From: Paragordius varius | Lineage: Eukaryota > Animalia > Nematomorpha | NCBI GenBank assembly: GCA_964247055.1 | Contig: OZ176052.1 | Coordinates: 7,688,001 to 7,752,000 of the forward strand | Reading direction: 5' to 3' | DNA length: 64,000 nucleotides | Part shown: piece by piece, positions 16,601 to 62,465 of the stretch | Layout of the letters: each line of letters begins with the position of its first letter | How positions within the stretch are numbered: the first letter of the stretch is position 1 | Position numbers and translations under genes: made by a program | Notes under the pieces: generated by a model | Database searches by the model: none | The model's input: only the letters and a program-made list of their open reading frames with translations | Told to the model about the DNA's origin: nothing

Positions 16601-19600
16601 AATCAAGGAATAACGGGAAAAAATGTTACAACAGCAATTATGGATGATGGTATACCTCTATAAAATTAATCAAAAATTAATATTTGCATATCATACTTTT
16701 TGGTTTTATTTTCAATTGGTAGAATGAATACAAAAATAATTAAAATAATGGTTAAAGATCAAAAATCTTTAAGGCTTAATTTTATATCCTCATTAAATTT
16801 GCGTTCCCTAATATTATTACAATTCATTAAGTAAGTTTAGGTATTTTTACCGTTTAGCGTTTTGTTATTTTAGCATGTATGCGTTAAAGTTATTAGCTAC
16901 ATAATTTTTTGATGCACCCCTTAAAACCATATCTAGATAGCGAAAAAAATATCAATTAAGTATTTGCACTTAGAATTTCGAGCTGAAGTGTATCACTAGC
17001 ACATTGCAGGAAAACATTAAATTAAATTTCTTGCGTAAGTAAGAATCTAGTATTAGAATTATCACTTAATAACAAAAAGGGACGAATTCCGATCGAAGGA
17101 TGCTTTATTTATGGCTAATTAGCCAAAAATAATTAGGCAAAAAATTATATGCTTTCTCCATAGTCCTAATTTGCCTAAATTTAACTATTAAAAAACACCC
17201 TAAACGAATATTATAGGCTATATAATAATAATTGAAATAAATCATATTTTAAATATTATATATATATATATATATATATATTATAGGTGTGGATTATACC
17301 CATGAAGATATGAAAGATAATTATGTAAGTACAAATGTATTTATGCAATTTTGATATAACATAAATCTCGAAAATACCATTGAACTCTTTTAATATTTCA
17401 CTCAAAGGAAAATTTTTTTGTAATAAATTTGACTTTATTCCCAGTATCTATATTTTTATTGGCGAATTGGCTTATAGTTTTAAAATGTTGATTGACCTTA
17501 ATATAAAATACATTTAGAATGCCAAAGCCAGTTATGATTTTAGCAGCAATGATCCATACCCATATCCCCGATATACAGATGATTGGTTCAACAGGTAATA
17601 CATATCACCCTTTTTGCTTAAGTATTTTTCATGCATATGTTACTTTTTTAATTGACAAAATAAGATATGAATATATCACTAACCCATAAAACATTTAAAT
17701 AAATGGCCCATTATAAATAATACATGCCCTGTTCAAATTTGTTTATTCCGTGAATTAAATTGCTACCGGTTTTCATTAATATAAATGAAATTAAAAAAAT
17801 TTTGTTAATCGGTACTTTTACCATAAATCATTATTTTTTTTCGTAGTCATGGTACTCGGTGTGCTGGAGAAGTTGCAGCTAAACGCGATAATGGTATATG
17901 TGGAGTTGGAATTGCCTATGATTCCAAAATAGCCGGAATACGTATGTTAGACCAACCCTATATGACGGATATGATTGAAGCCAATTCCATGGGCCATGAA
18001 CCCAACCTAATCGATATTTACAGCGCATCTTGGGGACCTACGGATGATGGAAAAACGGTAGATGGGCCACGCAATTTGACGATGCGTGCTATAGTCCGAG
18101 GTGTCAATGAAGTGAGTCTATTTTTAAATGCCTTGGTAGAAACGGTAAAGCTAGCTAGGTATAAAAATCAGGATTTTAAACAGTGTAACTTTTATATTAA
18201 CTGTTATTGGGCGGAATTATTGTGCAACTGGAGGGAAGGGTATTAGATGGCATTTTTAGATTTTTTTACTTTCTGAGTATTAATAAATCCGGTTCTTCAG
18301 AAGTTTTAAAAATTTATGGTTATTTCAGACACAATTAACATTGCGATCGTTCGATAGGTAGGTAGCAAAAAATATTAATCAGACAATAAACCATACATTA
18401 AAGAGAGAGAGTTGTGTCCCATATATCACGTTCAATATTCAAGATTGCATTTTCATTATTAATAACAAAGTTTTAAAACTAATTTTTCACAATGTTAGGG
18501 TCGCCACGGTTTGGGCAACATTTATGTCTGGGCTTCGGGGGACGGAGGCAAAGATGATGATTGTAATTGCGATGGGTATGCCGCAAGTATGTGGACCATT
18601 TCTATCAACAGTGCAATCAATACGGGCGAAAATGCTCGGTATGATGAATCCTGTTCTTCAACCTTAGCATCCACGTTTAGTAATGGAGGAAAAAATCCCA
18701 ACTCAGGAGTGGTAAGGAATTAAATGCTGCAAATACAATTGATAATATAAGCGTTTTTTAGATCGATTAAATATAAATACACTATGCACATTAATGTTCA
18801 TTAATTCATATTTATTTTGGTCCATTAACGCAATACAGTAGCATATAGGTAAAAAACAACAAATGGTTGAAATTACAATTTTTCCCTAAGATCATTAAAT
18901 TTTATTTATTATGGACAAAATTTGTTTTATATCATACACTACTGCAGAAACAATTGGCTTACAAAAATGTTAATTGACCAAAACTTATGTATACATAATA
19001 ATAATAATCGAATCATTTATTATTGAAATTAGGCAATATTTGTAGATTAATGTAGTCTATTAATATGTGCCTTTAAAATCGTTTGAAAATATTAATTTAA
19101 ATAGGCCACCACTGATTTATATGGAAAATGTACAAAATCTCATTCTGGCACTTCTGCTGCTGCACCAGAAGCCGCTGGTGTATTTGCTTTAGCCTTAGAA
19201 GCCAAGTATATTTATATTTTTGACATAAAATGTTCTTAATAAAAACCAAAACAATATACCAAATAAAGAAAATATATGATTACTTTAGTTGATCTGAACC
19301 AAGGGTGCTTAACACAAATGGCTTTACCAGCCGCTGAATAAAGAAACTGGCGAGCCGCATTCGCATAATATAAGAATATATATTTTATTTTATAAGCATA
19401 AGACAGTAAAAAGGTTTAGGTAGACAATAAAACTATTATTAATTTCGGCATTTTTCACTAGCTTCTTTGAAAGACTTTTATAAATTTGTTGAAAAATACT
19501 TTTATTAAGATTTGGGGAATTTTTTGCAAAATTATCGTATGTATTGGTAATTTTTCAATTTTTTCGTCGGCTAACATAATTTTGGAGGGGCGTATGTGGT

Positions 19601-22789: not shown

Positions 22790-23676
22790 ATGATCAAACT
22801 GCTTACTTTGCTTTTGGTTGCAACAGCCTGTTTCTGTAAGGAGGATGGCAAAAGGGTCGTTCGCCAAGCTGGTGTAGTAGGTGAGACTTTATTGATTTTA
22901 ACCGACAAATATAACCTATGCCTATCATTTTAGATCCATCTGGTCAATGCGCTGCTCCATATCAGGCTCATCCAACCGATTACTCCAAATACTTTACTTG
23001 CTCAAATGGTGTGGTAACTCAGATGACTTGCTCTCCTGGTACCTTATGGCATCCACTTAAAATGACATGTGATTTCAAGGATAATGTTTTGGCTTACTAT
23101 GCATCTATGCAAGCGTCTCCAACGGATGTTGCTCTAGGAAAAGGCGGACCATCTCCTCCCATACTTCCAGGTGCACCCATATCAAATATTGATGTGCAAA
23201 CTTTGAAGGCTATCCTGATGAAGATACTTGGTTTCCCCCCAGCTATTGCTGTCCCCCTCCCAGCCCCGTGGTATCCTATCCCAGGCCCTAGTGGCCCGTC
23301 TCAATCATATCCATCTGGTCCTTTTGGAGGTCAAGGTGTAGGTAAAGCTATCGATATCAGTCAATTGCCTTCTCCTCTCCCTGGATTTCCAAGCCAACCC
23401 CCAACAGGACCCGCAGTACAGCCACCACCACCTGGGCAATATCTGCAAGGTCAGTTGCCCACATTTGGCGGTCCAGGTCAAATCCCCAAATATGGTCAAA
23501 TTTCTTATCCATCGGGAGGCTTAATTTCACCACCATACAATCCAAGCGCCGGAGGAAATTTTTTCCCCACTTCAGCTAATCTAGGTCAACCCTCTAGTCA
23601 ACCAATTGTTTTACCACCGGGAAGTCAACAATTGTCTGCAAGTGATTTGCTAAGCATCCTTAATTCACGCAGATAA
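22790..23676 (+). CDS. Secreted protein with N-terminal chitin-binding (CBM14-like) domain and Pro/Gly/Gln-rich tail; exons 22790-22880, 22934-23676
   Basis: Signal peptide MIKLLTLLLVATACFC, basic site KRVVR|Q, 53-nt intron (GTGAG...TAG), then GQC...YQAHPTDYSKYFTCSNGVVTQMTCSPGTLWHPLKMTCD. AATAAA at about 23718 and 23725. Confidence 0.85.
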
Positions 23677-23770
23677 ATGTGTTCGTTAGCGCACTGTGTA
23701 TTTTTCATATACGTATTCAATAAACAATAAATGCTGCATTTTAATATATTTATTTTTTGCTGCTTTTGTT

Positions 23771-24713
23771 ATGCATACTGGGGAAAATATTTTGATAATT
23801 CTGATTCCTTTTTTTATAGTAAATATAATTTTTGGGTTTGTCGGAAATTTTTTATTAATTTTTGTGTGCTTAAGGGGCCGCCGAGTTTCGGCTAAGCCAT
23901 ATCTTATTTTAAAATATTCGGCTTTTGCAAATTTGATCATCTGCATAGGTTACATGATTAATCCGGTTTTGAGGTTTACTCTACCACGGAAATACAATCT
24001 ATTGATTTATGACTGGGTATGGAATATATTTTTATATCGGGTTGTTTTATCTACCCATTCGATTATGAAAAAATTTAGTTTTTCCATGACATTGGCCCTA
24101 AGTCTTGATCGCTACCGTCTGTTATCCTATATTTTATCGTACGAAGTTTTGCATATCTGTTGTTCAAAAAATTGTTGCATCCTTTTTTGCAATTTGCACA
24201 ATTGTGGTTGCGTTTATATATAAACGGTACAAAATCGTAACTATTGACAAGAATAAAAAGTGGTATATTGCAAAGATTAATTATTATAAACGCAATATTC
24301 GTTATTTGCCATATGAAATTTTAATCGAAACCTTGCTTTTGTACATCCCTATTATGATTATACTTGTCTTAAATTTTCGCATTTGTCAAAAGTTTACCAA
24401 TGTAAGAAGAATTAAACACATTTCTACCCCAAGTTCGCGAAAGATTCAAAATTTGCACCGTTTTGGGACAGTTGAACCTCAATTAATTATATCTCTGGTT
24501 ATTACAAGTTTTATTATGGCGATCACTTTGGTACCAATTTCTGTCACTCGGATAGCCATTGTAATACTCAATCAAAATTATCAAACGCCAGTTTTTGTCA
24601 TGTTTAATTTTGTGGAATCGTTTAATTTTACCATGAACTTTTATATTTACTGTTGGATCAATACGGATATCAGACGATTAAGTACAAAAATATTGAAATC
24701 ATGTGCCTTGTAA
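23771..24713 (+). pseudogene. Intronless class A (rhodopsin-like) GPCR, FMRFamide/myosuppressin-receptor-like, frameshifted at about 24116
   Basis: TM1 FGFVGN, TM3 TLALSLDRY in one frame; VCYP and TM4-TM7 (NFTMNFYIYCW) in another. The frame changes just after DRY. Could be a sequencing error. Confidence 0.7.
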
Positions 24714-29689: not shown

Positions 29690-31543
29690 TTTTTTATCTC
29701 TAATATATTTAATCTAATCTTGTCAACGAATCGCATCCCTAATGATTGGTCAAAAAGCACCATCATACCCATTTATAAAAACAAAGGAGACATACTCATT
29801 TGTTCCTCCTATAGACCACTACAGTTGTTGGAACACCCGTTTAAAATTTTTGCATTATTGAATCAAAACTAAGATCAATCATTAGTATACAGGAATCACA
29901 ATATGCCTATAAACCAAACAGTAGCACAATTGATGCAATCTTCATTTTGAGAAGATTGCAAGAGAATTATTTAGCGAAAAATAAAAACTCTATCATGTTT
30001 TTTTGATTTACAAAGGGCCTTTGATTGTATCCCCAGGAAGTTAATCACATACGAGCCAATAATGTAGATGATTGGATAATCAAATCAATAGAAATGATGT
30101 ACTACAAAACAACAAACTGCGTCAGATTAAAACTAGGCAACACAGCTTTTGTTCCAAACGAATCTGGTCTTCATCAAGGGTCCATCCTAAGCCCTCTATT
30201 TTTCATTTTAATAATGGATAACCTAACAAAAGATATAAAACAAGGCCTACCATGACTTATCTATGCGGACGACATTGTCCTCACTGCAACATCAATGGAA
30301 GAATTAAATCTAAAATACAACACATGGAAATCACACTTAGAAAAGGGTGGAATGAATATAAATATAAGCAAAACAAAGGTGCTGATAACGGGTGAAACTG
30401 TATATGAACGACCTAAGTGAACGAGTTTAATATAGAAATAAAATTTATTATCTCAAATTGTCATTTTATAACTGATTCCTTTGTGATTGTATAGGTTTAT
30501 TTATATATTTTAGCAAGGATAATTGACAATAACTAAATTGGAATACTATTTGTATTAAATACAATGTCACATAAAATATCCATATATATAAATAAAATGT
30601 CATATAAAATATAAATAATAATAATAATAATTTAACTTAAGGTTATAAACTTGGCAACTAACTTAATTAGAATACCATTTGTAATAAATACAATCATACA
30701 AATTATCCATATAAATAATAATAATTTAACCTAAGGTTATAAAGAATTAACACAGTTTCCATGTGGAGTATGTGATTTAGATGTTAAACTCAATTCAATC
30801 CTATGTACATCATGCAATAAGTAGGTACACAAAAAGAGCTAACTTATAAAAGGGACATTAATTTAACAATGATAAATTTATATGTGAATCATGCAAAAAT
30901 AAAACAATAAATCACTCACCCACTTCAATGAATTACCTTTATATGGCAGACGCCAAAATCGAATTGGTGAATAATTTCAAATACTTGGGCGATGTCATAC
31001 GTTGTCTAGGTGGAATAAACCAATCAGTTAAATATAGATCCCAACAGGCTTGGGTAAAATATCATCAACTTAAAATAGTGCTCAAAAATAAACACATATC
31101 AGGAAAAAACAAAGGTTTGATTTACAAAGCGGACATACGTCCCATACTCCTGTATGGAAGCGAGACATGGCCGCGATGACAGATTCAATCGAGAAAAAAC
31201 TAATGAACATACAAAAACGGATGCTAAATTTATTCGACCCCAATGAGTTAAATTCAAATTTGCATAAACTGTACCAAATTGAACCTTTAAATGTTATGTT
31301 CAGAAAAAATAAGCTTAGATATTTCGGACACATCAAACGTGCTCTAGAACAATGGACAAATAAAATTTTATCCCTACATCCCGAAGGTAACAATTGCAGG
31401 GGTAGACCTTCATTTAACTGGGAAAAAAACAATAAATAATGATTTAAGTGTTGTTAACATTGATGATAACGCCTGGCAGGATCGCAAATATTACAGACAG
31501 CTTCTATACGGATACAATGGCTAGCCATTACACAAAGACGATA
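29690..31543 (+). mobile_element. 5'-truncated, mutated RTE-clade non-LTR retrotransposon, with 338-bp insertion at 30419-30756
   Basis: RT motifs [47 protein letters not shown]; Cys-rich insert PCGVC..SILCTSCNK typical of RTE; multiple stops and frameshifts. Confidence 0.9.
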
Positions 31544-31791: not shown

Positions 31792-32335
31792 CTACATATT
31801 GCGGGTTGGGAACCAAGGGATCAGAACTTCGGCAAATTTTTTTCCTATGAAAAATTAAAAAAATGAATTGTACTTGGCATTGGTGGAGGCAATTGATCTT
31901 GATGATTTCGCATATACCATAAAATCCTGTTTCTTTCCTCATATTGGTGTATGTAATAATATTTAACACCGTACCAGGTTGTAGGACCGACAGCAGCAGC
32001 ACCAATAATGTATGGAGAAAAAGCTAGATATAATGTTAATTATAATTCTAACTTATAAAGCGTGGAATATTTGTCAAATTCCTATATGAACATATAACTA
32101 TTGTCATAAGCGCCAAAGTATGAAAAGTGTAATATTTTTGTTGATTCCTAACATAATCATCGGTAAAAAGCATTTTATCAATTTTCTTTTCTAAATCTGA
32201 CCGTTTATCTTTAGAAAAATCGTGGGATTGGGTTGGTAGATGCACGTCCTCATCCCAATTTGGATAAATCGGAGTAATACCGAATCTAAAAGCCCCATCA
32301 AAGCCAAAATATTGACTTTCGTCATAAAACTTCAT
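31792..32335 (-). CDS. NDUFC2: NADH dehydrogenase 1 subunit C2 (B14.5b)-like; exons 32335-32053, 32023-31874, 31844-31792 (161 aa)
   Basis: Removing two 29-nt GT-AG introns gives ...ERNRILWYMRNHQDQLPPPMPRKKFAEVLIPWFPTRNM*. This matches the remembered NDUFC2 C-terminus (human YMKLHPEDFP..KKTYGEIFEKFHPIR) and has two upstream hydrophobic segments. Confidence 0.75.
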
Positions 32336-32409
32336 AGTAAAAACATGCGTTTGTTAACATGCACAGACAAAAACATATTGATTTTGGCAAAAATTCAAAT
32401 TAAAGTTTT
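32336..32409. promoter_or_regulatory. 74-bp gap between divergent start codons of NDUFC2-like and POLE (bidirectional promoter)
   Basis: ATG at 32335 (-) and ATG at 32410 (+). Confidence 0.7.
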
Positions 32410-33928
32410 ATGGACTCAGAATATCAGCTTATAAAACAAAAAACTTTGTTGTCCATTGATGAATATTATGGTTATTATGATGATTGCTATGAATATGAAA
32501 AGATTGGTTGGTTAATTAATATTCAACCGGTATAATTAAAATTATTTTTAAGACCGTTTGTGTAAGCGAAAAGAATACCATAAAAAGCTGTGTAAATTAT
32601 TATTTTCTGGAAAATAATGGGCGAAAATTTAAGTGCACATTGCATTACAATCAATATTTTTATTTGAAAGTAGATCCACATTTTTTCAGAGAAATCGTTG
32701 GATATTTAAATAGAAAATTTCAAGGAATCATCTATGATATTAAATATGAAGCAAGGGAAGACCTGGATGCAGTACCTTTATATATAAAGATAGAAACCGG
32801 ATCATTTATTTGGCTCAAAAACCATATATCTCAAGTTGTTATTTGAAAATGTTCAAAATTTAATGAAAGTTAAAAAGATGTTAAATCCAATTATACGGAG
32901 AAACAAAGAATTCTATTTATCCCAAGATGTCTTTACCAATCGGTACAATTGAATTAGCTTTATTTTGATTCAAATATCTTGAAAGACGTTCTGTATCGAG
33001 ATAAGAAATCGAATCATTTTTATAGGAATCAAAAACTTTTTTTCAGAACAGTTTTGAATCAAAAAAGAACTAAAATCAGTTCCAAAATATTTTTTAGAAT
33101 ATAATGTTTTTTTATATGAATAATAAAAGTATATTTTTTTCTATTTTTCAGAATAGCACACTATTTTTTATGGCCTATATATATATATATATATATTATA
33201 GTTTTTGCGGGTATCTATCAGGGTAAAAATTTTAAATTAAAAACCAATAGAACCGGAAATTTTTTTGCAAAAAAGCAGGAATTAGCAAAAATCTCTAGCA
33301 GAACCTTATCGGCTAAAAAATAATTTGGAAGAACCGAAACTAAATCCAAAAACGGTCTTGATAAAGATTCAACCCTTAAATAGATTATTTTACCGATTAC
33401 ATTAACATATGCTTTATTGTTTTTTTGTTAGCAATATTTCAGTGTCTAACATTCAAGTAATACAAAATACTAACACGGTGAATACTGCTCACCAGAACAA
33501 TGATGATTTAATTGCAACACATATTCTCGATATGTTGGAATATGATGTACCATATTATATCCGCGTATCCATAGATTTAAAAATATTTGTCGGTCATTGG
33601 TACAAGGTGAAGACTAAAACGGGTCAAGAAGAGCATTTAAATCCAGAAATAATTTTGATACCGGATCTTGAGGAAAGGCCTGTAAGTTTTTTTTTTATTT
33701 TGTATAATATACATTTATATCGGCGTAAAAATAATGCATTAACATTTTATTCCGGTTTTTGAGCTTTATGATTGAACACATTTGAATTTGGTATGAAAAA
33801 TATATCATTTCGCTTTAAAGAAGATTGATGGCTATCAAATATATATTTTATAGGATAATGTGAAAAAATATTTTTTTAATAAATGAAGAATTTTTACTGG
33901 TTTGCACAACATTTCCAATTTTATCGTT

Positions 33929-33969
<41 letters not shown>

Positions 33970-36900
33970 ATTTACAATTCAAATCCAATTTTAAACAATA
34001 TAAATATCCCCTGAACAATTCAAATTCACCCTAAAATATATTATGTGTTTTTTTGAGATTAAACATTACCTATATTTTTTTAAAAAATTTGTTTTAAATT
34101 AAAATAATACCGAAAAAATAATAAACTATGCCATCAAGATATATTTCATAATAATAATAAAATATATTAGTTCGAAAACACATAAATTATTAGGGTAAAT
34201 TTGAATTTTTCAAGGGTGAATTTGAAGTGTAAATGGTATATATAAGCAGTAATATCTAGTATATTGTTATTAAATACTATGAACCGTTTACAATTTGCTA
34301 TTTATTATTATGGTTTAAATTATTAAACGGCCTTCAGTAAAGTACCGAAAAAACTATATTAATAGTTTGCAATATGGCTAAAAGAAAAATGACCTTTTTG
34401 TTTATCTTTCTCCTCGCTTTCTGTGATTTATGGCCATTAAAATAATATATATTTTTTGCTAGTTGTTTTTATAAACTACCTTACCTTAAATTGAATATTA
34501 ACTATGGCTATTTTAGGAAACTTTATGATGAATTTAATTTTATGTTTAACATATTAATTTTTACCTAAATCTTAATACTTAATGTAGTTTAATCTGTTGT
34601 AAAACATTATAACGTTAATTATTATGATAGTAATATATTTCTAAATTTCCATAGTTTTTCATAAAGTATTTATTTGATCATTGAATTGATAATTGTAATA
34701 CATTTGAATTAAAGTATTTCTTGCCAATCTTTTTATATTGTAAAACTATATATTACTAGGAACCAATAATTTTAGCCTTTGATATAGAAACTACTAAAGC
34801 CCCATTAAAATTTCCCGATGAAAATATCGATCAAATCATGATGATCTCCTATATGATAGATGGACAGGTTGAATTTTAATTTAATTTGCGAAAACATTTA
34901 TAAAATTCGGACAAAGAATAATTAATTTTATTGACATTTATAAATAATTTACATTTTTTAGGGTTATCTAATCACAAATCGTCAAATTGTTTCCAAAGAT
35001 ATTGATAATTTTGATTACAATCCAACGCCTGAATTTTCTGGTCATTTTAAAATATTTAACGAAGAAGATGAGGTTTATATTTTTAACATTAATATATTTA
35101 AATTATTATATAACATTAAATATATTTTTTGTTATTATAATTTTATAATAAAATCAAGAACATATTGCATGATAGTTTAATATTTTTGTCATATATTTAA
35201 CTCATTTTTGTGATATACAGTGTGATCAAATATACATTGCTGGTTTTTCATTAAATTTTGCCAGATAGCATTTTTAGTAACGGATTTAATTGTGTTCATA
35301 ATTAAAGAAAAAAGAAAGCGATAAATTATATTATTATATGCACCAACTTTCAACCAATAATGCATCTCTTGACTGTTAACATATACCATTTACAAATCAA
35401 ATTCACCCTTGAACAATTCAAATTCACACTAAAAATAATTTATCTGTTTTCGGGGTAATATCATCATTAATATGAAATATATTTTTACCACATAGTTTAT
35501 TATTTTTTCAAAATTATATTATTTAACAGAATTTTATATTTTGAGATAATTTTTAATCTTAAAAACACATAATTTATTTTGGGGTGAATTAGAATTGTTC
35601 GAGGGTGAATTTGAACTGTAAATGGATATCCGGTAATATTCAATAAATAAACTAACATTATTTATTTAGGCACACTCTTTATATAAACTATAATCTTTGC
35701 AGACGTGTATATTTATTATTGCTAATTTTTATACCAATTATTTTATTATTTTATAGTTTTTTTTGCCCTTAGATTGCACTTATAAATCGGTTCATAACAC
35801 ACATTCATGAAGTACAACCTAGTATTATAGTAACGTATAACGGTGATTTTTTTGATTGGCCTTTTGTTGTGGCCCGCGCACGCATTCATGGAATTGATGT
35901 TTTCAAAGTTTTGGGGTTTTCTGAGGATTCTCAAAAAAATTTCACCAGCCGTCCCTGCATCCATATGGATTGCCTTAAGTTAGTATAAATGATGTTTAAA
36001 TAATATAGTTTATTAAATTTAAAAAATTTAGAAAAAAAACTAATGAAAACCAAATTATAGTGTGTTCATGGCCAAAAAATTTTGAATTTATATATTTTTA
36101 AATTGTTGAATATTAAATTACACATTATGTGAAAACTTAAATGCTAATTTTTTGTTTAAAATTGGATGATGTAACAATTATATTAAATTTTTATTGACTT
36201 TGAATAATTATAATTTTAACTAGGCTATGTCCTTTTCCATTGCCCAAAAAAATATATTTTTTCACAGATTCAGATGAGGTATGTTAAATATGTGTTTTAT
36301 AATTTTTATAGATGGGTAAAGCGTGACAGTTATTTGCCAGTGGGAAGTCAAGGGTTGAAATCTGTTGCTAAAGTATGAATATTTTTATATTAATCAGTAC
36401 ATTTCCCAAAATTTCCCAAAAACCGTATTTACTGTAATGAAAATTATTTTTTGTTTCAATTTTAAAAAATTGGTTTTTTTTGTAAACCTTTTAGTTAAAA
36501 CTCAATTATCATCCCTCCGAATTGGATCCTGAACGCATGGTAGCGATGGCAGTTGAAAATCCGCAAGTTTTAGCAAGTTATTCTGTGTCAGATGCTTTGG
36601 CCACGTACTACCTTTATGTCAAATACATTCATTCCTTCATATTTTCCTTGTGTACCATAGTCCCTATGTGCCCTGATGATGTAATGATAATATTTAATAC
36701 AACTTAAATTTGGAAAATGTAGTATGATTAAATATACATTGCTGATAGTTTATAAAATATTGCCAGATATCATTTAAAGAAAAGAAAATATTACTAGTCA
36801 ATAGCAGTAAAAAGCGAAAAGATAAATATTGCCCAATAATATTGCTGTATGCTCCAAATGCTATCTGACAATAATAAATGAAAAACTAGCATTGTATACT

Positions 36901-39900
36901 TACTCATAATGTAATAATAATACGAATATTTTTTAAGATTCCTTATAATAGATGAAGAATGCCTGTTACTTTTTTTTATTTGTGTCAGGGTACATAAAGT
37001 TTTTAGCGGTTTTTTCTGAATAGTGCCTTTTCTGAAAAGCTGATCATTGCATACTTATCAGTTTAAGCTAATTAATTAATTAATGGGCGCTGTTTATTTT
37101 CACAACCTAAAGGCAGTGTGTATATTTGATTAATTAAGTGATTTATAATATTGGATGAAAAACGATCAGAATGTATTAATATTCAAGTTTAATTTAGGGA
37201 TCTTTAATACAAAATTACAAAAACATCTTAATATTGTGTTTTTAACATTACTTCCCAAATTATATATTTTATTTTTCAATCAAATAGTCTGTAAACAACA
37301 ATCATTTACTTGCAAGAAAAAAATTAATCAGTTTTTAACGTTCCCATAGGTGTTAAGGAAAGGCTCCGGGACTCTGTGTGAAACCTTGCTTATGGTTCAG
37401 GCATATCATGCTAACATAATTTTCCCAAACAAACATTTGGAATACGATAATTTGGATGAGGATGATACGGCTGCGCGTAATGAAGCTTCTGAAGAGTTAG
37501 AAGATAATACTGCTGAAATCAGAGGCCATCATAGCAACCAACAAGAAAATTTGGGACATCACAGTTGGACAAAAAGAAAAGTACACTATACTTTTTAAAA
37601 CAAATTTGTAACATCAAAACCCTAATTTGAAGATAGTTATTGCAAATTGTAGTGGGATGTTTGATATATGCGTTAGTGTTGATTCTATGCTTATTTAATT
37701 TGGGTACTAGAGTTTCAAATCAGAATATGTTGTTTATTTTAATATCTTTGACAATAAAAACCGTTATTTTAAAAATAAAAGATAATGGTTAGTTACACGT
37801 AATACAACTTCGCTACTGATTTTTAAATATTCTTAGATAATCGATAAGAGTTTAGGGAGACCAATCAAACAAAAATCTAGCATGAATACTGGCCCTAAGA
37901 ACAATAGTGCATCATCATTCAACAGGTATAAATTCACTAAAGATGGTTATGTACTTGAACAAGAAACTTATATTGGGGCCCATGTTGAAGCCATAGAGTC
38001 TGGTATATTTCGATGTGACATCCCTATGCCATTTAAATTGGTAATTAAGAAATGAGATAAATTTTTATTATAGTTGAATTTGGAATTATACAGAGAAAAC
38101 GTAAATATTAAAAGACAAATCTTTTTTATTAAAACCTTGCTATATACATATATATATTATTACCTATATAATTTCAATTTGGAAATATATTACTGATATA
38201 TTACTAATTAAGATCTATTTTCATTTTTTGCGACATAAAACGATGTGTTATATTAAGGTTTAAAAAATATTTTTTTAAAAAAATATGTTATTATCATTAT
38301 TTTTATAGGATTTGACTTTAAATGGCGGTGCACCTTTGAGGCGTTTTTCCAATCGTTTTATTATCTGACTAATATATATAAATAAAGCGTTTTGAGATCT
38401 TTTGTTATTGTATGTAATGTCTACCGGTGGCAGTTCAATCGAATAACTTTTCATCAGTTTAAGGATATGCGTGTCTTCGTCTTTCAACATGGCCTGCCCA
38501 TTGTGATTTGAGATTTCTTTCAACATTGTTGATGGAGTTGTGATTGAGTATATGGTATGGGTTTATAGTTTCGCTATAGCTAGACTTTGGGATGTGAGCA
38601 AAAAAATTGTTTTTACTAATTTGGATACATCGTATGTAAGTTTATATTTACATGTATTTAACATCGGTCAGGTTTTTGATTCTTATTTAAGGACAAGACC
38701 AATGGCTGTGGTTCAAATGGCACACTTAGTTTATAGTTTGACGAATTTATTATTATTTTTAACAAATGGTATTTTTTCCACAATTATGAAATACGATGTT
38801 TGATAACGTGTTTGATTCCACCTCCAGCTGATATCCTTCCTGAAAGTTAGTGCAATAAGTTCTCTTGGAATCGCATCAAAAGCTTCCATGTCAAGAATTG
38901 CATAGTGCAAAGATAGTTTTTTAATGTGTGTGTTTTGTTGTCTTAATGTGAAGATAGCGTCGATTGTACTTTTATTTGATTGGAACCCGCATTTCATTTC
39001 GTTTTAATGTATTTTGGGTAAGATATTAGAAAGTATTACTTTCAGTTATCGAACACATATCTTGCAACCCTATTTAATAATATAATAAAAGATGAAAAAA
39101 TACGGGCAGACTGGGAAAAAGCCGAGTTATACCCATATACAAAAAAGGTCACCCTCTCCGGCCCACATCCTATCGACCATTTAATTACTAGACCTCACGC
39201 CATGAAGTATATGAAAAACTAATACTCTCTCTAAAATGCGCTTTTCAATCAAATGAAACATTAAGAGAACAACAAAACTTGCACACATATAAAAATCACC
39301 TATATACTGTGCACTTCTAGACATGCCCAGAATAAAACCACACGGACTAAGTAAAAGCTTTTAAAAAATGTACTCCTGATGATGATTTTTATTAAAGTAT
39401 ATATGTCTTTTAATTTTTACATTTTGTCTGTATTAATTTATTTTTACTGTAATTTTGTTTAAATTTTTACCTTTGTAAACCAATTATTCTTTCACTTTTT
39501 CCTATTTTTTTCCTAATAATATAACAATTTAAATATATGGTTAAAGGAACAAACATATGTGGATTATTTGATTGCTAATGTTGGTAAAATAATTGCCAAT
39601 ACCATTGAGCAGGAAGAAGAAATTTCATTGACGCAAATCACTAATTTTTCCGAAGTAACAAATTTTCTTGTTTTACAAATTACATCATTAAGGCTATTAA
39701 ATTTATAACAATTAGGGAGAAGCTTTTCAATGTATATTTATTTTATATTTTCAAATATTATATTATAAATTTGATAACTATATATATTTAAAGGTTTGCG
39801 AACAAATTGAAACTCAATTGTACAAATTAAAGGGGCAAGAAAGCATAACTGAATGCCCAAAAATTTATCATTTGGATGTTGGGGCCATGTATCCAAACAT

Positions 39901-42900: not shown

Positions 42901-45317
42901 TGCAAACATGTCCGAAGAAGAAATATTTAATTTGGTTGCCGAGAATAAAAGCATGTCCAAACGCTTAGATGAATACGGTGACCAAAAGTCGACATCAATC
43001 AACACCGCTAAAAGATTAGCCGAAGTATATGGCTAATTATTTCATTTTATTATTACATAGTTTCAAATTCAATATATAGTATTGCGAAGCAAACAGAAAA
43101 CACATAAAATTATGATACAAACAAATATTTATGTTGTTTTCATCATTTTTGTTCTTGGTAGATTCGGTAGATTAAGCATTGGACTCGTACGACCATAAGT
43201 TTAGTTTGTGATGCTCTCAGTTTGGGACAGGGAGAGTAACTAGTGGTCCTACATAAATGGCTTCGCGACCGTATTTTTGACTCAAAAATCCAGCGGTCGC
43301 ATTCGAAAAATATAGGGGCCTTAATATTTTTTAGATTTAAACTTTGCATAAAACGCAACTACTATTTATTTCATCAATTTTACTAACATTTTGTAAGCAT
43401 ATTATTCAAATTGTGGAGTTTGTATTCATTTAATTTCCAATTTTTTTGCGGGCCGCACATAGTATCTCGGAGCGTCATATGCGGCCCGCTGGCCGTGTGC
43501 TGGACACCCTGGGTTTAAGCCTTCTTCATGTGTAATTAACACAAATTCTTATTCTCTAAATAAATAGACTATGAATGATAACTCTTATCCATCGTATCGT
43601 ATATTAGTTTTTGGGGGATAGCATAATCCGTGATTCCAAGGGTGGCCTTAACTGTTGTTACATCATGAGCCGGAAGCCTGAAGGTGCACCACTCAGTGAA
43701 CGTGCCGTGCCCTACGTTATTTTTCAAGCTGAAGAAAATGTAAAACGGCATTACCTACGGAAATGGCTTAAAATTGATAGCTTTGATGATAATGGACCAT
43801 ATATTGATACAAAAACGCGACGGGTAGATATTCGTGCCATACTTGATTGGGATTATTATTTGGAACGGATTGGGAGTGCTATACAAAAAATTATAACTAT
43901 CCCTGCCGCTCTACAACACGTAAGGATTTTTAGGATTTTACACAATTTAGTTAATGTACGCAAATTAGTATAGCCTTGTATGCAAAAAAATTTTTTTGAT
44001 TAAATAGCTTATGACCAACGAATTCATTTGTCGCAAAATATTTTTATTTGTTGACGACCTAGTTTTTGAAATTTTGAGGGATCAAAATAAGTGAAAATTA
44101 AGGATAATTAAAAAAATAATGATAAAATTTGAGATATTATGGTTTTTTTATGATTTTAGCAGATATTTACAATTTATAAATAGCCTAAAATCATAAAGTT
44201 TTTATAAAAATTCAGATCAAAAAATCGCGTTTTTCTATCATTGTACTAAAAAAACGAAAAGTTTTTTATAAAACTATATTAAATTTTTTTTAAAATTATT
44301 TCTAGCTAAACTCACTATAAAAATATTAACATTCATATTTTATTCAGTAAAAAAAACTTTATATGTAATTAAAACTAAAAAATTATTGTTTTATTTTTCA
44401 TTTTTTTGTCATCTCGTTTATTTTAGTTTTATTTTGATATATAAGTTTTTTTACTGAATAAAATATGAATGATAAGATTTTAATAGGGTAGCTAGTTGAT
44501 AATTAAAAAAAATTATTTTAATATAGTTTCATAAAAAAATTTTGTCTTTTTAGTACGTTAATAGAAATACGCGATTTTTTTATCTGAATTATAAAAACCC
44601 TAACTATATAATTTTAGGATATCTATTAATTGTGATTATCTGCTAAAATGATAGTAAACCATTCTCAGTTCTATTATATTTTTTTAATTATCCTTAATTT
44701 TCACTCTTTGCCCAATTATGATTTTCTCTCATTATTTCAAAAACTAGGTCGTCAACATAAAATATTTTTCGGCAAATGAATTCGCTGGTCATGAGCTATC
44801 TCATAAAAAAAAATTTTGTTAAAAAAATTAACCCTCTTTTTTGCACACAGTGTAATATTTAAATAAGCGAAACTCATTCTTGATAAACGGGTGTTATATT
44901 TTAAATCTAAACATGAAAAATGTCACAAATATAAATAGGTAAATAATATTAGTAATTATTTGTTACTGCGACATTTATACATTGGCATTTTCCCCACCAA
45001 CAATTAAATATTAATAAAATTTATAAAACCAATTAGTCTATACCCAAAAATGCTTTAAATTTGAACACATTTTTAGATAAAAAATCCTGTACCTCGTGTC
45101 TCTCATCCAGATTGGTTGCATCGTAAGCTAATGTCCATTACTGATGTCTACAAACAAAAGAAAATTAATAACATGTTCATTTCGAAGCCCAATATAAACG
45201 GTTGTGTTAATGGGGTTAGAGATATGGAAGATTTAACCAATAATGTTGGCGATACTATGGATGGTAAATAATTTTTGGATTTTATGTTACTTTATATATT
45301 AGACAATGATCAAATCT

Positions 45318-51300: not shown

Positions 51301-54300
51301 CATCATTAATGATTATATTTTTTCGAAGTTTGGATTTGAATGGGTCTACCGGTTTTACTGTACCAGATCACAAAGCCAGCATTTTCCATTTTTATAAATA
51401 TATAGATTATCAAAACAATTATTAAAGATAATTTTCTCGCCATATAATAAATATATGTTAAATTCATTTCATATATAAAAAAATTTTATTTCCCAAAATT
51501 TACTTTTAATGCCTTATAGTTTGTCCATAGAAGATGACATTAACCTCTTTAATGCAACGCAAAGTAAAGTTTCAACCGACGGTGATACAGATTATAATGT
51601 GTGCTCTAAACCTAATACCTTTAACAGCCCTGGTTTTTATAGGAGCATTTGTTTTGAATTTCATATCGTTGGACTTGCCCTTAATGCTGTAATATCATAT
51701 CATCGAATCCTTGAAAATGAAGGTTATGTTTTTTTATTACTTTTATTTTTTTACAGATAAATATTTTTAGAGAAAATCCAAGATTGTAAATTGTAATTTT
51801 ATATTATGTCCTTTCATCAATAATGGTACGTATTTTATAAATATACCATATTTTACAAAAGGTATCCTCCAATAAATAAATTTATTTTACCACTACCATA
51901 AATACAATTTGAATAATATGGTAGAAATTAATTCAAATTTTTTCCAAAACAAATACCGGAGACCAATTTGGTTCTGATTTCGATCCCTGGAATAAACAAC
52001 TTTTATCAAATTTATAGGCCTGATACCTGCGTTAGCCTTCCCAACGCACACCAATGTTAACAATGATGGGCGAAATAAAATAACGCTCAAAACTACCAGG
52101 AATGCTATTAATATCGATTCATCTTTTGTTTCATCTGCCGAAACTGGTAATCGCATTGCTAAGAAACGAATGAAAGATACTTCAACCACTCCACATAACA
52201 GAAATTTATCAAGCCTGATAGATAGTTTTAATGCCAAATCAAGCAATGGGACCACACTCGACAACAATACCACTGTTCATGACTATTATGATGGTATGGA
52301 CGAAACACTAATAACTGAGAATCGTGCTCTAGATAAAATGGTAGAAACTGAGACAACTACTTTATTTTACGACGAATTAGCGAATGATTCTGAAAGCTTT
52401 AGGTACGTATTTATAATTCTTAAACATAGTTTTGGGTATCTTAAACACTTTTTTATCCGTAAACAAAATTATTTAGTAGAAAAAATACCATTAATGTGTA
52501 TATTTTTTGATGTATAAGTTATTAATTGTTGCCAATCCGTTTTAAAAAGATACCATTTTGTTGAATTAACCAGTTTTATGTATGAAATAGCTAATGAAAA
52601 AATAATTATAAGTTAAAATAAAGAATTTCCCTATATTATTCATGAATAATCACGGTAATATTGAGCATTATTTCGTATCGTCTTTGTGTAATGGCTAGCG
52701 ATTGTATCCGTATAGAAGCTGTCTAAGTGCGATCCTGCCAGGCGTTATCATCAATGTTGGCAACACTTAAATCATTATTTATTGTTTTTGCCCAGTTATA
52801 AGTTGGTCCACCCCTGCGATTGTTACCTTTGGGATGTAGGGATAAAATTTTATTTGTCCATTGTTATGGAGCACGTTTGATGTGTCCGAAATATCTAAGC
52901 CTATTTTTTCTGAGCATAAAATTTAAAGGTTCGATTAAGTACAGTTGATGTAAATTTGAATTTGACTTATTGGGTTGGAATAAGTTTAGCATCCGTTTTT
53001 CAATGTTCATTAGTTTTTTCTCAATTGAATCTGTCATCGGCCACGTCTCGCTTCCATACAGGAGTATGGGACGTATACCGGCTTTGTAAATCAAACCTTT
53101 GTTTTTTACTGATATGTGTTTATTTTTGAGCACAAATTTAAGTTGATGATATTTTACCCAAGCCTGTTGGGATCTATATTTAACTGATTGGTTTATTCCA
53201 CCTAGGCAATGTATGACACTGCCCAAGTATTTGAAATTATTTACCAATTCGATTTTGGCATCTGTATTTTATGATTTATTGTATTATTTTTGCATGATTC
53301 ACATATAAATTTATCATTGTTGATTAATGTCCCTTTTATAAGCGAGTACTTTTTTGTATACCCACTTACTGCAAGATGTGCATAGGATTGAATAGAGTTT
53401 TACAACTAAATCACATACTCCACATGGAAACTTAGGTCGTTCATATACAGTTTCACCCGTTATCAGCCCCTTTGTTTTGCTTATATTTATTTTCATTCCA
53501 CCCTTTTCTAAGTGTGATTTCCATGTTGATTTAATTCTTCCATTGATGTTGCGGTGAGGAAAATGAGTCCGACTCCCACCTCCACGTTGTGCACCCTGGT
53601 TAATACCAACGGGAGCGGCAAAGGAAAGAAATTATCTGTGTGGGATGTGGTGGAAAATGATAACTACCATTTTTTTCCTATAAAATACCACAATACCTGC
53701 ATTCACACAGATGATAAAGCGGGTTTATCTGGCGCTATAACCAGTTGCTAGAAACAACCAATTTGTAATATATGTAAGCGGAGATGGAACTCTGTAAGCC
53801 CAGAAAGGCGATTCCATAGGTCAGGGACACCGAAATAGTCTCTTGATTTGCAAAGGCATGCAAAACAATCGCCTTAATTAAACCGTATATGAAAATAATG
53901 AATTTGAGCATTATTTGTACTTACTTATTATAATTCATTTAATATAATCATATATATTACCTATATATGTATATATCCTATATATATGTATATATATATA
54001 TATAGGATATATAAATATTGATAAAATCATTGTAAACCAAATTTTTCCACTGATATATGTCGCAATAATTTTAATATTTTATTTCTTATAATCAAACCAG
54101 AGCGCTTCGTAATTTACTCCACACCTGGGTCAGGGACGTTGCCAAAGATTATAATGTGTTTGCCGATAATTTAATTCAACATTTTTATCGTTGGTTAAAA
54201 TCGAGTAAATCACTCATGTATGAACCAAGCTTAGCGCATGCAGTAAATCTCTTAACCCAAAAATTACATCAAGCGGTATATAAAAATATATTACATAATA

Positions 54301-57300
54301 TTTACAATTTTATTCATGATCCCTTAATAAATTAATTTTTAAAATTATTTTCTCTGCAAAAATATTAATACTTTAATTTTATTAGGTGTTAAAACTTTAA
54401 TTTTATTTCATAATAACTTTTAACCGAAAAATGTTGTTGGTATTAGATGCTTTGGATCAACAATTTAAATAAAATAATTTTTGTGAAAAGATCATAAAAT
54501 TGTTGCATATTTTTAATTGACCATTTTTTGAAGAAATAATGAAATTCCAGCAGGAAATTACTAATCATACCATATTTTTCCGCCATTTATGTAGCTATAT
54601 AGGGAGCTTAAAAAATTGGATGTTACAGTTATCCATTCCACTTTTGATACGTTGATTATTGAGTGTGGTAAAGCTGAAATGTCCCAAGCTTTGGCCTATG
54701 TTCAATACATTATGAAAGTGCTTAAAGACCATCCGCTATTTCATGGTTTAACCATGCAAATAAATTATGCTTGGGATATTTTACTTTGGTTAGACTCTAG
54801 CAATTATGCCGGGATTAAAGTTTGTTTGTTGATTATGAAATATTTAATTTTTTATAAAAATAAACTAACTCATTTACTCACTTATCAAGGATTTATTTTG
54901 ATAAGAACGTAAATTTTATGTAAAATACAAATTATCAAGATGTATGAATTTAAAACAATAAAAAAATATGATTTATACAATAAACATTTCCTGGTGAAGA
55001 ATATTTTATTACATGACCATTTTATTTCTTAGGCCAAATTTGATCCTAACGAACATGCAAATGCAAATACAAGGCCAATGTTTAGTGAACCCTTTTCTCG
55101 AATATTTATATGTGATGAAACAAACATGAATTCCACTGTTAACAACGGCCAGTATGGCAATGATTCTCAAAATTATCTGTTGGATTCGCTTGAAAGGGCA
55201 CAAGCCAAAATTGAGAAAGAAAGGGAAAAGGTTGATATGAATTGGACACTATCCCGTTATCTGACTGTCTACCCTGATTGTCAATACTATTTTAATGTAA
55301 CATATTTTAATAACAATAATTTTAAAATTTTTTGCTTTTCCATACTAAAAATAGTAAAAGGACGTAAAAAAGTTTAAATTTTTTTAATTGACATATGATA
55401 TAATAGGACCAAAACATTTTTGTTCCCTCATGCGATTGTATTAAAATATGTAACGGTTAACAAAACTCGAAAATTTAGGTGTAACTAACAGTTTTATCCT
55501 AGTACTCTAAAAATTTTAATAATCATAGTAATATACTATGAGATAATAGCAAATTATAATGCGAATAAGTCAAAATTAATATTTCAGTTTTACGGAATTC
55601 TTTGAAATTCTTTTTTTAGATGATAATTGCTTTGTATGTTATGTCGACATATGATTACTTGCAACAAGAATTAATTCTCCAAGAATTACAAGAGAAAGAT
55701 TATTCCCACCAGCGGAATACATTTTATCACAGTCAAGATGCTGAAAATGATATACTTGGTCAATTAACAAAGAACGAGTATAGCACAATTTAATCAATAA
55801 AATTATATAAATGCTAATTTTATATATTAATTCTTACCAAAACTATGTAAACTTTCTATATTAATTATTAACTTTGCAGATTTTAATTTATTATAGGTTA
55901 ACTCTGTTTAAATTTAGGATTTAATTTTATTTCTTATTTTTAGAAATCCTTGCAAGCATTTGTCACCCGGCCTAATATCTCATTGTCAAAATGTTATCGC
56001 AAACGAGTTTAACGAAAAAATATTCAAGTATATTTAATTAATTTTTACGCCTAAGTATTCTTTATATATGTTCTTATATAATATTTTATTACGTAAAACA
56101 AACTTAGAATAATGCAAAAAGTACAAAAAACGACCCAATCCTTTAACTATGATCCTTGTGCAGAGCCAATTGATACAACGAAAAAGATTCAAGCAACGTT
56201 TTACCGCGAATTTGTGGGTGAGGGCAGAAATATTGCCTTGGATTTGGGCAATTTAATTTGTTATGTAAGTATAAATATTACCCTATGAAATATATTTTTA
56301 ACAAACATTTGCCAATCTTGTAATTTTTAATGATAAACAATAATAGTAAAACTCCATGTATTATGTGGTATATTTATTAATATATGCTGGCAAATATGAA
56401 AACATTGATGATTTATATAAATTTAGGTATTGGGATTAGATACAATCATTTCACAACAAGTTCAAAAGTTAAAACGGAACATTTTAACCATTTTGAATGT
56501 CAAGGAATTTTCTGATCAAGCCGATTTCAAATTGAACCATATGTCGTTTATCCTTAAAGAAGTATAATTTTCGTTAATAACTTTCAATAAGGTTAGTAAC
56601 AGGGTTAATAGGCAATTTTGCACAGTAATAACCAGTTACTAATTTGTGTATTATTGGTCTTTAGACAGGTTAGTTTTCGGGTTATATGCTAATACTACCT
56701 TTGTTTTTGTTAGATGCAGGTAATGCAGGTAAACTTGATATACTTATATTTAAAAAACACACATATTATACCAATCCCAATAAATATTTTAATTAATTAA
56801 CCAGCATGCGCATTCGTATTCAAAAAATATTTTTATATATAAAATCTTTCAAAATCAAATAAATAAAAACCGGTTCAGATTTGAGTTCACATTCTCTGGT
56901 CATCACGATATTTTACCCACTTAATTAAATCTTGCTATTTTAGATTATTTGTGAACATTGTCTAACATGTCGAGATTTTGACGTTTGTCAAGACATAACA
57001 CTTGATGAAGACTCCAACGAGTATATAGATAATAATATAATATATAAAAATTCAAAAATTCTTTATGCATTGGAATATTTAGTTATACCATTTACAGTTC
57101 AAATTCACCCTTGAACAATTCAAATTCACCTTTAAACAATTAAAATTCACCCTAAAAATAAATTATGTTATTTCGAACTAATATAGCTCATTATTAATAT
57201 AAAATATATGTTTATGGTTATTATTTTTTCAGTATTATTTTAATTTAAAACAAAATTTTTATTTTTAAAAAAATATATTAAATATAGGTATTTTTTACTT

Positions 57301-59074: not shown

Positions 59075-62000
59075 ATGTTTTACCATCAGGACAACCATGT
59101 GTTATCAGTCTCCTCGGATTATATATCACAAAAATTTACTGAAGAAGATATTAATGTTAAACGACGCGGTAGAAATAAAAAAAGACCAGTATTTAAAAAA
59201 GTCAGAACAAATAATTATTGCTCAGACGTAATCAATAAAGGTGAATGTAAGACGATAAATTGTAAATCCATTCATGATATTGATAAATGGATTACTGAAT
59301 TTCCCAGTTTGGATTATATATGTCCGAATTTTGAAAATTTTGGATTTTGTAATAGTGGATTAAATTGCAAATTTTATAAATCTCATTTAATAATTGATGA
59401 TAATTACACCAATGCAATAAATTTGGACCTTTGGCAACGTAAACGTCATTTATTCTTTCCGCGAAATTTGATTAACCCTAAAACGTTGGAAAGCTTGCGA
59501 AAAAATGCCTATAGTTTTAATCACTCCAAACAAATAATTGATAAACTGGAATTAGACAACAAACGAGTCACTTTATCTAAACACCTTAAATTAGTAAATA
59601 CATATGATGTCGCCGATGATTATGATTTTCCCGAAATCAATCATAAATTCAATACATATTGGGATACTCAATTGTATTTAGCTCCCCTAACCACTGTCGG
59701 TAATCTCCCATTCAGGCGAATATGCAAACAACTCGGAGCTGATATAACGTGTGGAGAAATGTCGTTGTCCACTAGTTTATTGAAAGGTAACAAATCAGAA
59801 TGGGCTCTCTTGAGGCGACATGCTTCAGAAGACAAATTTGGAATCCAAGTATGTTTTGCGCATTCCCTTTTTAATACAAAAACCGATTTTTGTTAAAAAC
59901 AACGTATACTCCAGTATGTCCAAATTTATATTGATGAAAAAATTAAAACTATAATTTATGTCAATCAAAATATTTTATTTGATATTTTTTTAACAGCGGA
60001 TGATTTATCAGATAATGCTTATTTAATTAAAGGTCCCCAAATCTATAAATTTTGGTTGTTTTATATTTAAGTTATTTAATAATTGATATAAAAAGTATAT
60101 TGAAACGAACTAAATATGTGTTCTAAAAATTTGTTTTTATCGTGGGTTAGATTTCGTTTCAATAGTTTTCAATCATCAGTGGTGTTAGTTTCGCGATTGG
60201 TAAAATACATGATATTTTTTAAAAGTTGTTTATCAAATATTATATGAAAAGGTTTGCGGTTGTCACCTAGATTCTATGACTAAAGTTGCTCAAATAATAC
60301 GGGATTTACAGGATACTTCATATCAAATTTCTCCATTATATTCGTCTAATAATTCAAACGAATTTTATGATGAATGTGTCAGCAATTTTGGCGTTGATTT
60401 TGTCGATATAAATATGGGGTGTCCGCTTGATGAGGTTTGCAATAAAGGAGCTGGTGCCTCTTTAATGACCAGATTGGATCGCACAATGACTATTGTTAAA
60501 GGTTAGTTTTAGTTAAAAATAAATTTAATCATTTTTGGACCGTGTTATATAATATATACATATATTGCGTTACATTTATTTTAGTGAAATTTCATGCTAT
60601 GGAATCTAGATATTTTAATGAAGTCTAAGATTATAAACTGATAACTAATAAGGTTTGTGGATTACGTCTGAATAAAACCATTTTTAATTTTTACATCATA
60701 ATCCTAACGTTTATATTACAATAAATCCATTAATTATCAGGTATATCATTATTGTATATTTTTTAACGAATTTCGAAACATTTGATAATTATATTTCGAT
60801 TTGAACCATATAATTTGTGTTGATTTTTACTACACTTTTTCAAGTTTTTTTATTTTCATGAGTTAGATTTAGATTATGATTGCTAAAGTATCAAAATCAA
60901 TTTGATACCATTAGGTATGAGATCGATGTTGCCTTCAAGTGTTGCCCTTACATTAAAAATGCGGACAGGTATAAAGGATGAAACACATTTGGTGCACAAA
61001 CATATACAACATTTAGCAACACTAACTGATGGTATTAAACGAATAAAGTTATCACCATCACATAACAATAATTCTCCCAATCTAAACAATGATGTGGAAA
61101 ATAAAAATTGGAATTTAGTATCCCTACTTACCATACATGGTAGATCCAAAAATCAACGATATACTAGGCGTGCTGATTGGTCCTACATTAAATCTTGCGT
61201 CGATTTAGTTTCCGAAAACAAAGAAAATTTTACGCTGCCTATATTTGGTGGCGGGGATGTATATACACCCGGAGAATATTATTCTCGCCTTGCAGAATCT
61301 GGTACTTTTTTCATGTATAATTAACCGAAATATATGTATTGTATTATGGTAATTACGAAATTCTTAATGTATTTTATTAGGGATTGGAACCGTTTTCAAT
61401 TTCTTTTCCAAATCAACTTCAATCTCTGGTCCTTGTTCCACATTTTTTTGAATAAAATGCGGTTTTGAGCCAAATGATTTTGGCCCTAAAGATTATTTTC
61501 CTTAAAATAATTAGGTTTTAAGTTTTGTTGTTTTTTGCCAAAATAATTTGTTTGGTTTGTTTTTTCGGTAAATGGTTAAGATTTAGTTTCATTAAATTGG
61601 AATCCTAAAATTTTAACATCAGGATAAAATGTCAAAACAATTATGATATAAAATATTAAAATTTTTATGTTTTGCTTTTTATGAATCGAAAATTATCCAA
61701 AGTTAATAGAGAAATAAAACAAGTAAAGTTTATGTTGTTTTAAAAAGTTATAAAATTTTTACAACCGATGTTTTTTGGTTAAAACAGTTTTTGGAAAGGC
61801 TTTATATTTTTTGATTAGGAGTTTCTGGGATAATGATTGGCCGTGCAGGTTTGATTAAACCTTGGATTTTTACCGAAATAAAGGAGAGACGAGATTGGGA
61901 TATATCAGCTACCGAACGACTTGATATGTTTAAAGAATATGTATCCTATGGTCTTCAGCATTGGGGATCTGATACATATGTAAAAATATTTTTGCAACTT

Positions 62001-62465
62001 TTGTGTTTTTATTATAATTTGTTAATTGATGGAAATGTATTTAAATATATGTTGTGGTATATTTAGGGTCTTGAAACAACACGCCGTTTTTTGCTGGAAT
62101 GGATGTCTTTTACTCACAGATACATTCCGTTAGGGATTTTAGAAAAGGTTCCATCTACCATTGTTGAAACATATCCATATCACCATAACAACCATACTCA
62201 ATTTAATGCGGAATGTATTAAGCTTTTCAATGAGGAAAATGATATTAGGGGACTAGCAAATCATAAGTATATTGGACCTGTAACGATTAATACCAGAACC
62301 CCCTTTCGTCACGCTCAATATGGGAGAACGGATCTTGAACAATTGCTTTCAAGTTCTGATTGTAAGGATTGGATAAAAGTTACAGAAATGCTTTTGGGCC
62401 CTGTTCCCATTGATTTTAACTTTTTACCAAAGCACAAGTCTAACTCGTATGAAAGCAATGGCTAA
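59075..62465 (+). CDS. DUS3L: tRNA-dihydrouridine(47) synthase [NAD(P)+]-like; exons about 59075-59848, 60252-60502, 60917-61303, 61820-61979, 62068-62465
   Basis: KRRGRNKKR, two CCCH fingers, [16 protein letters not shown], catalytic [33 protein letters not shown] and C-terminal [10 protein letters not shown]. Start may instead be 59037. Confidence 0.95.

Follow-up and report, generated by a model that had tools for sequence, protein, structure and literature searches.

The window, that is, the whole 64-kb stretch of DNA analysed here, has a GC content of approximately 27% and carries a complete POLE gene on its forward strand. The gene extends from 32410 to 58103 (+) and is divided into 46 to 51 exons depending on the guide protein, encoding approximately 2,280 amino acids without stops, as delineated by tblastn and spliced alignments. 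Full-length POLE queries in tblastn identified exons from 32505 to 58103. Spliced models, built on the POLE proteins of Hydra vulgaris, Priapulus caudatus, Lingula anatina, and Betta splendens as guides, remained open with all four of them, giving products of 2,275 to 2,347 aa. These models were generated with our own spliced aligner, a protein-to-genome dynamic programming procedure that permits only GT-AG introns, of any phase and with a minimum length of 15 nt, assigns a flat cost to each intron, and heavily penalises stops.

The family-B catalytic motifs of the POLE model are all intact, including Exo I (FDIETT) and Exo II (YNGDFFD) of the exonuclease and ELDTDG of the polymerase, and the model also has the cysteine clusters of the C-terminus. 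Compared with vertebrate POLE, the predicted protein is collinear over its full length and exhibits approximately 44% identity across approximately 2,330 aligned positions. Over the whole protein, the identity is about the same with every named POLE compared and carries no phylum signal. Even the second exon alone matches human POLE structures in a phmmer search (residues 72-140, E = 1.8e-10). The assignment of the gene to POLE, originally proposed from the letters of the sequence without database searches (hereafter the sequence-only reading), is thus upheld by a complete, open gene with intact motifs and by the match of exon 2 to the human protein.

Several other features are located in the window, beginning with a divergent neighbour on the reverse strand (31845-32335, -), whose ATG at 32335 is separated from the POLE ATG at 32410 by 74 nt of DNA. 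The frame of this neighbour becomes continuous once two GT..AG segments of 29 nt each (32052-32024 and 31873-31845) are taken out, which makes them candidate introns; Pfam and PDB searches with pieces of the neighbour returned no match. The POLE ATG lies so close to the coding sequence of the neighbour that hardly any space remains for a 5' UTR, and an acceptor-like TTAAAG at 32400-32409 precedes this ATG by 4 nt, an arrangement that overlapping 5' ends or trans-splicing at the POLE start would fit. According to open reading frames only, the window further contains a furin-like convertase exon (17944-18246, +), a proline-rich, secreted-looking frame (22918-23676, +), a seven-helix receptor-like frame (23696-24713, +), reverse-transcriptase fragments (30025-31439, +, and 38731-38997, -), one of which lies inside a POLE intron, and, downstream of POLE, a DUS3-like tRNA-dihydrouridine synthase (59075-62465, +) with an unbroken first frame of 273 aa. 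Rfam gave no match anywhere in the window.

Two candidate micro-introns at the 5' end of POLE

The coding sequence of POLE is interrupted twice within its first few hundred nucleotides. Exon 1 (32410-32529, +) contains 40 codons, extending from the ATG (MDSEY...) through the conserved GWLIN motif to LINIQP, and its 3' end was placed identically by all four guides. It is followed by micro-intron 1 (32530-32552, +), a phase-0 GT..AG segment of 23 nt with a GC content of 9%. Exon 2 (32553-32771, +) comprises 73 codons, from TVCVSEK to EDLDA, and is succeeded by micro-intron 2 (32772-32793, +), which is likewise GT..AG and phase 0, with a length of 22 nt and a GC content of 23%. Both segments were chosen by four of the four guides. 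Exon 3 (32794-32942, +) starts with KPDHL and leads into an ordinary phase-2 intron of approximately 489 nt, the acceptor of which is not firmly placed, as the guides disagree. Exons 1 and 3 share frame 0, while exon 2 is read in frame 2.

The two frame breaks, mended by the removal of 32530-32552 and 32772-32793, had been noticed in the sequence-only reading, and its sequences, coordinates, and junctions proved exact. The three-frame view also bears out its observation that neither length is a multiple of 3 and that retention leads to early stops: retained micro-intron 1 opens with the codons GTA TAA, so that its second codon is a stop, and retained micro-intron 2 results in a stop at 32844-32846, after 24 codons. 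Once both segments are removed, the product is collinear with the orthologues in the alignment with each of the four guides, and the one extra Lys past the second junction, which had also been pointed out, is real relative to the four orthologues aligned.

The segments can be distinguished from their surroundings by composition, with GC contents of 9% and 23% versus 35% for all POLE exons and 27-29% for the three flanking exons. Their ends read GTATAA...TTTAAG and GTACCT...AGATAG, and their 5' splice sites, GTATAATT in intron 1 and GTACCT in intron 2, are of the GTA type found in the long introns of POLE; the 382-nt POLE intron at 56562 also begins with GTATAATT. Micro-intron 1 contains an A run in the middle and a run of five T ahead of the terminal AAG, while micro-intron 2 has no pyrimidine tract and displays A residues 6-8 nt ahead of its AG. 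A branch point is not assignable from two sequences. U12-type motifs, namely the 5' site (A/G)TATCCTT and the branch site TCCTTAAC, are absent from both segments.

Such a pattern exceeds chance expectation. Given a stop-codon frequency of 0.072 in the window, a 73-codon open stretch would be encountered with a probability of approximately 0.004. Based on the dinucleotide frequencies of the window (GT 0.043, AG 0.039), the joint probability of finding GT and AG by chance at both of the exact boundaries defined by the orthologues is approximately 3e-6.

We consider that both segments are removed from the POLE pre-mRNA as true spliceosomal introns of the U2-type GT-AG class, derived from two ancient phase-0 introns that shrank to 23 and 22 nt, with a probability of roughly 85% given the sequence comparisons described here.

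Evaluation of alternative splice sites

All frame-restoring donor and acceptor pairs were enumerated and scored with a family profile HMM built from 137 orthologues, which left two serious alternatives. The isoform lacking the 23- and 22-nt segments reaches 136.7 bits, versus at most 122.5 bits for every alternative that does not involve micro-introns.

The first alternative concerns the acceptor of intron 1. If the donor at 32530 were joined to the AG at 32572-32573, a canonical GT-AG intron of 44 nt would be excised and the frame would also be restored, at the cost of seven more codons (TVCVSEK). The score would then drop by 14.2 bits, from 136.7 to 122.5, and the spacer between GWLxN and YYF, the length of which is exactly 18 residues for 113 of the 116 orthologues, with none shorter, would be shortened, whereas the 23-nt version gives exactly 18. 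Moreover, the additional 21 nt, directly 3' of micro-intron 1, are exon-like in composition (43% GC), the acceptor is purine-rich, two earlier AGs (32552 and 32566) would have to be skipped, and the 23-nt intron was preferred by four of four guides. A 44-nt intron 1 is accordingly regarded as quite unlikely, even with the polymorphisms described in the next section counted in its favour.

The second alternative shifts the donor of intron 2 by 3 nt upstream, to 32769, producing a 25-nt GC-AG intron and the junction EDLD-KPDHL without the extra residue. Here, too, the frame is restored, and the profile score even rises by 4.6 bits, because the one-residue insertion is no longer needed. Nevertheless, the site would be displaced by one codon from the ancestral position, and GC-AG introns are approximately a hundredfold rarer than GT-AG introns in animals, a background that counts against this version. 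No GC donor occurs among the 32 robust POLE introns, but this is no test, since only GT was allowed by the aligner. We judge the GC-AG version unlikely; it would still be a micro-intron, leaving the main conclusion unchanged.

Support from DNA sequencing samples

The interpretation of the two segments as introns depends on the accuracy of the assembled sequence, for which public sequencing data offer an examination. Seven sequencing runs contain the stretch, and the Logan contigs of four of them (X1, X3, X4, and X5) were compared over 32100-38050. The X1 contig shows no difference over 32232-33168; X1 is possibly the sample of the assembly itself and hence does not count as independent support. 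The X3 contig, from another study and with another organism label, shows no difference over 32558-32857. X4 and X5 represent another sample of the study of X1, from a different and more divergent individual, and their listed differences include only substitutions and no indel. In X4/X5, micro-intron 1 is identical, while micro-intron 2 carries at least two substitutions (32776 C>T and 32789 G>T), with its length, GT, and AG all kept.

At least eight polymorphisms were recorded in exons 1-3, of which at least four are synonymous and at least four are conservative or loop changes. Among the listed exon polymorphisms, two of eight fall in the 21 nt directly after micro-intron 1, both of them non-synonymous; these fit a weakly constrained loop and equally fit the 44-nt alternative for intron 1.

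These comparisons bear on whether the frame breaks might be assembly indels, or whether the locus might be a POLE pseudogene with a working copy elsewhere. Two shifts of the frame that offset each other (+23 and +22, together 45) might in principle stem from errors. However, the contigs of three samples, another individual included, carry the segments with the same lengths and no indel, which answers the check for assembly deletions that had been proposed in the sequence-only reading, and the GT and AG boundaries lie exactly at ancestral intron positions. Decay is further contradicted by a product open over all of its approximately 2,280 aa with catalytic motifs present, by the synonymous nature of four of the eight listed exon polymorphisms, and by the failure of a search of the 64-kb window to find a second copy of the POLE region. 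Since the same lengths recur without indels in the DNA contigs of these samples, both assembly error and a decaying pseudogene are very unlikely.

X4 and X5, with a locus share of 0.25, were considered as possible RNA and rejected, as their introns are covered as evenly as their exons; the same holds for X1 and X3, so all four are DNA. Five RNA-labelled runs with the same species label gave a locus share of 0.00, and exact spliced-junction patterns had no matches in metagenome or metatranscriptome contigs. Searches for relatives were conducted at the protein level. Neither exon 2 nor exon 5 retrieved a homologous protein within the permitted length range, a profile of Hydra POLE and the exons of the window recovered distant POLEs only, without a hairworm, and no close relative was present among 269 retrieved proteins.

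Ancestral intron sites in other phyla

The history of the two sites can be traced through POLE in the four guide species: introns were placed in each orthologous locus with the same aligner, and the N-termini were aligned with MAFFT. The site of the 23-nt intron corresponds to alignment column 70 in phase 0, where introns of 2567, 160, 79, and 508 nt are present in Hydra, Priapulus, Betta, and Lingula, respectively. The site of the 22-nt intron corresponds to column 143, also in phase 0, where the respective introns measure 2119, 365, 119, and 219 nt. In the sequence-only reading, both sites had been matched to phase-0 introns of human POLE; this agrees with the vertebrate compared here, which is the fish Betta rather than human. 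The phase-2 site of the third intron, of approximately 489 nt, is common to Priapulus, Betta, and Lingula.

Exon 2 spans two further phase-0 introns of the orthologues, at columns 97 and 112, both of which occur in Hydra and Betta and one of which occurs in Priapulus and in Lingula. As neither is found here, the 5' end of POLE has undergone loss of introns in addition to their shortening, and exon 2 is, by the aligned exon boundaries, a fusion of two or three exons of other animals.

The coincidence of the segments with ancestral intron sites is also informative with regard to bypass without a spliceosome, either by programmed ribosomal frameshifting or hopping or by somatic DNA excision. Nothing specific favours such a process, under which GT..AG ends at ancestral intron sites would have no reason to exist; TAA is, moreover, the second codon of the first segment, and no small DNA excision system of such kind is known in animals. 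Bypass is regarded as extremely improbable.

Distribution of intron lengths across POLE

The introns of POLE on which all four guides agree number 32 and form two separate groups, consisting of the 22- and 23-nt introns, which are the first two of the gene, and thirty introns of 68-1698 nt, with no robust intron between 23 and 68 nt. The expectation that introns would otherwise be long therefore applies to 30 of the 32 robust introns of POLE, the one gene measured. Both micro-introns lie within approximately 400 nt of the putative bidirectional promoter between POLE and its divergent neighbour, the gene with the two 29-nt candidates.

Additional calls of 21, 27, and 30 nt (45201-45221, 51601-51627, and 56198-56227) were rejected as introns and are probably in-frame alignment gaps, as their lengths are multiples of 3, they were proposed by one or two of the four guides, and they fall in the poorly conserved C-terminal half.

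Within the long POLE introns, the segments 33891-34288 and 35284-35681 show word depths of 1e5-2e6 in all four DNA runs, and many joints (direct, inverted, and going back) connect one with the other. These segments are very high-copy repeats, perhaps MITE-like.

Proposed mechanism of excision

Studies of the two segments suggest a mechanism that can be divided into two aspects, namely the origin of the introns and their recognition. With respect to origin, two ancient phase-0 introns, still 79-2567 nt in other phyla, would have been reduced to 23 and 22 nt. With respect to recognition, excision would proceed by intron definition via minimal signals, comprising a 5' GTA, a 3' (A/T)AG, and an AT-rich interior, with a putative branch adenosine approximately 10-13 nt ahead of the AG, the acceptor being whichever AG comes first past the branch point. 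With signals of this kind and a branch adenosine so placed, we infer that the spliceosome tolerates a distance of approximately 10 nt from the 5' splice site to the branch point, and it would thus be able to process introns of approximately 22 nt. Transcripts left unspliced would be non-productive, since translation would stop at once in intron 1 or after 24 codons in the case of intron 2.

Comparison with known tiny introns

Introns of comparable size have been described in a limited number of lineages. A survey of 51 animal genomes in Mol Biol Evol (September 2026) found introns below 30 bp to be restricted to Dicyema japonicum and the myxobolid Myxozoa, where the splice signals are pared down to GTa/AG, and did not mention Nematomorpha (PMC13644364). 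The sequence-only reading had located introns this short mainly in ciliates, nucleomorphs, and dicyemids; the dicyemid part stands, with Dicyema in the survey, while the list has to be extended by the myxobolid Myxozoa, now published too (PMC13644364). Judged by length and sequence, both candidate introns of POLE fall within this published animal ultra-short class, being shorter than 30 nt and having reduced GTA/AG signals.

The resemblance extends to several other characteristics. The introns of the Myxozoa (Henneguya, Thelohanellus, and Myxobolus) and of Dicyema are likewise 20-30-nt GT-AG introns at conserved positions between conserved exons, AT-rich and approximately of the form GTA...AG (PMC13644364), and these animals are, like the present one, members of parasitic lineages. 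In contrast, the genomes of the Myxozoa and Dicyema are compact, with a median intron length of 22-27 bp (PMC13644364), whereas here two of the 32 robust POLE introns are tiny, namely the first two of the gene. The remaining POLE introns measure 68-1698 nt and contain very high-copy repeats, unlike those of the Myxozoa and Dicyema, and the lineage differs as well.

Ciliates (Paramecium, approximately 25 nt, and Stentor, 15-16 nt) and the Bigelowiella nucleomorph (18-21 nt) have introns in the same size range, the retention of which also leads to premature stops. In these protists and relic nuclei, introns are tiny almost without exception, whereas two separate length classes occur in POLE here. 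The ordinary short introns of animals, of approximately 45-90 nt as in C. elegans, Drosophila, Oikopleura, and flatworms, share AT-richness and removal by intron definition, but the two introns of POLE have less than half of the usual minimum length.

No published report of tiny introns in hairworms was found in the literature; the hairworm genome paper of Cunha et al. was not among the results, and absence from print is therefore unproven. We raise tentatively the possibility that introns below 30 nt have arisen independently in Metazoa a third time, here for the first time in a genome that is large and rich in repeats, and that they form a separate, promoter-proximal class that does not extend past the first few hundred bases of genes, with long introns downstream; on present indications this possibility is rather doubtful. 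Were such a promoter-proximal class true, it would speak for a recognition or evolution of micro-introns that depends on position, through a link with the cap or the start of transcription, and not for compaction of the genome as a whole.

If confirmed by RNA, the two introns would place one lineage more beside the two published animal ones (PMC13644364). An essential replication gene would then rely on the removal of introns of 22-23 nt, hardly longer than is physically needed to form a lariat, and extreme intron shrinkage would be possible without genome compaction. There are also practical consequences for genome annotation. Gene finders and aligners commonly set the minimum intron length at 30-50 nt, and in this genome such a minimum would leave genes with shortened or broken 5' ends. 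A preprint on the hairworm Gordionus montsenyensis gives a GC content of 26.93%, the same as that of the present window, and a BUSCO score of 71.6%, without mention of introns; missed tiny introns might contribute to the low BUSCO score of that assembly.
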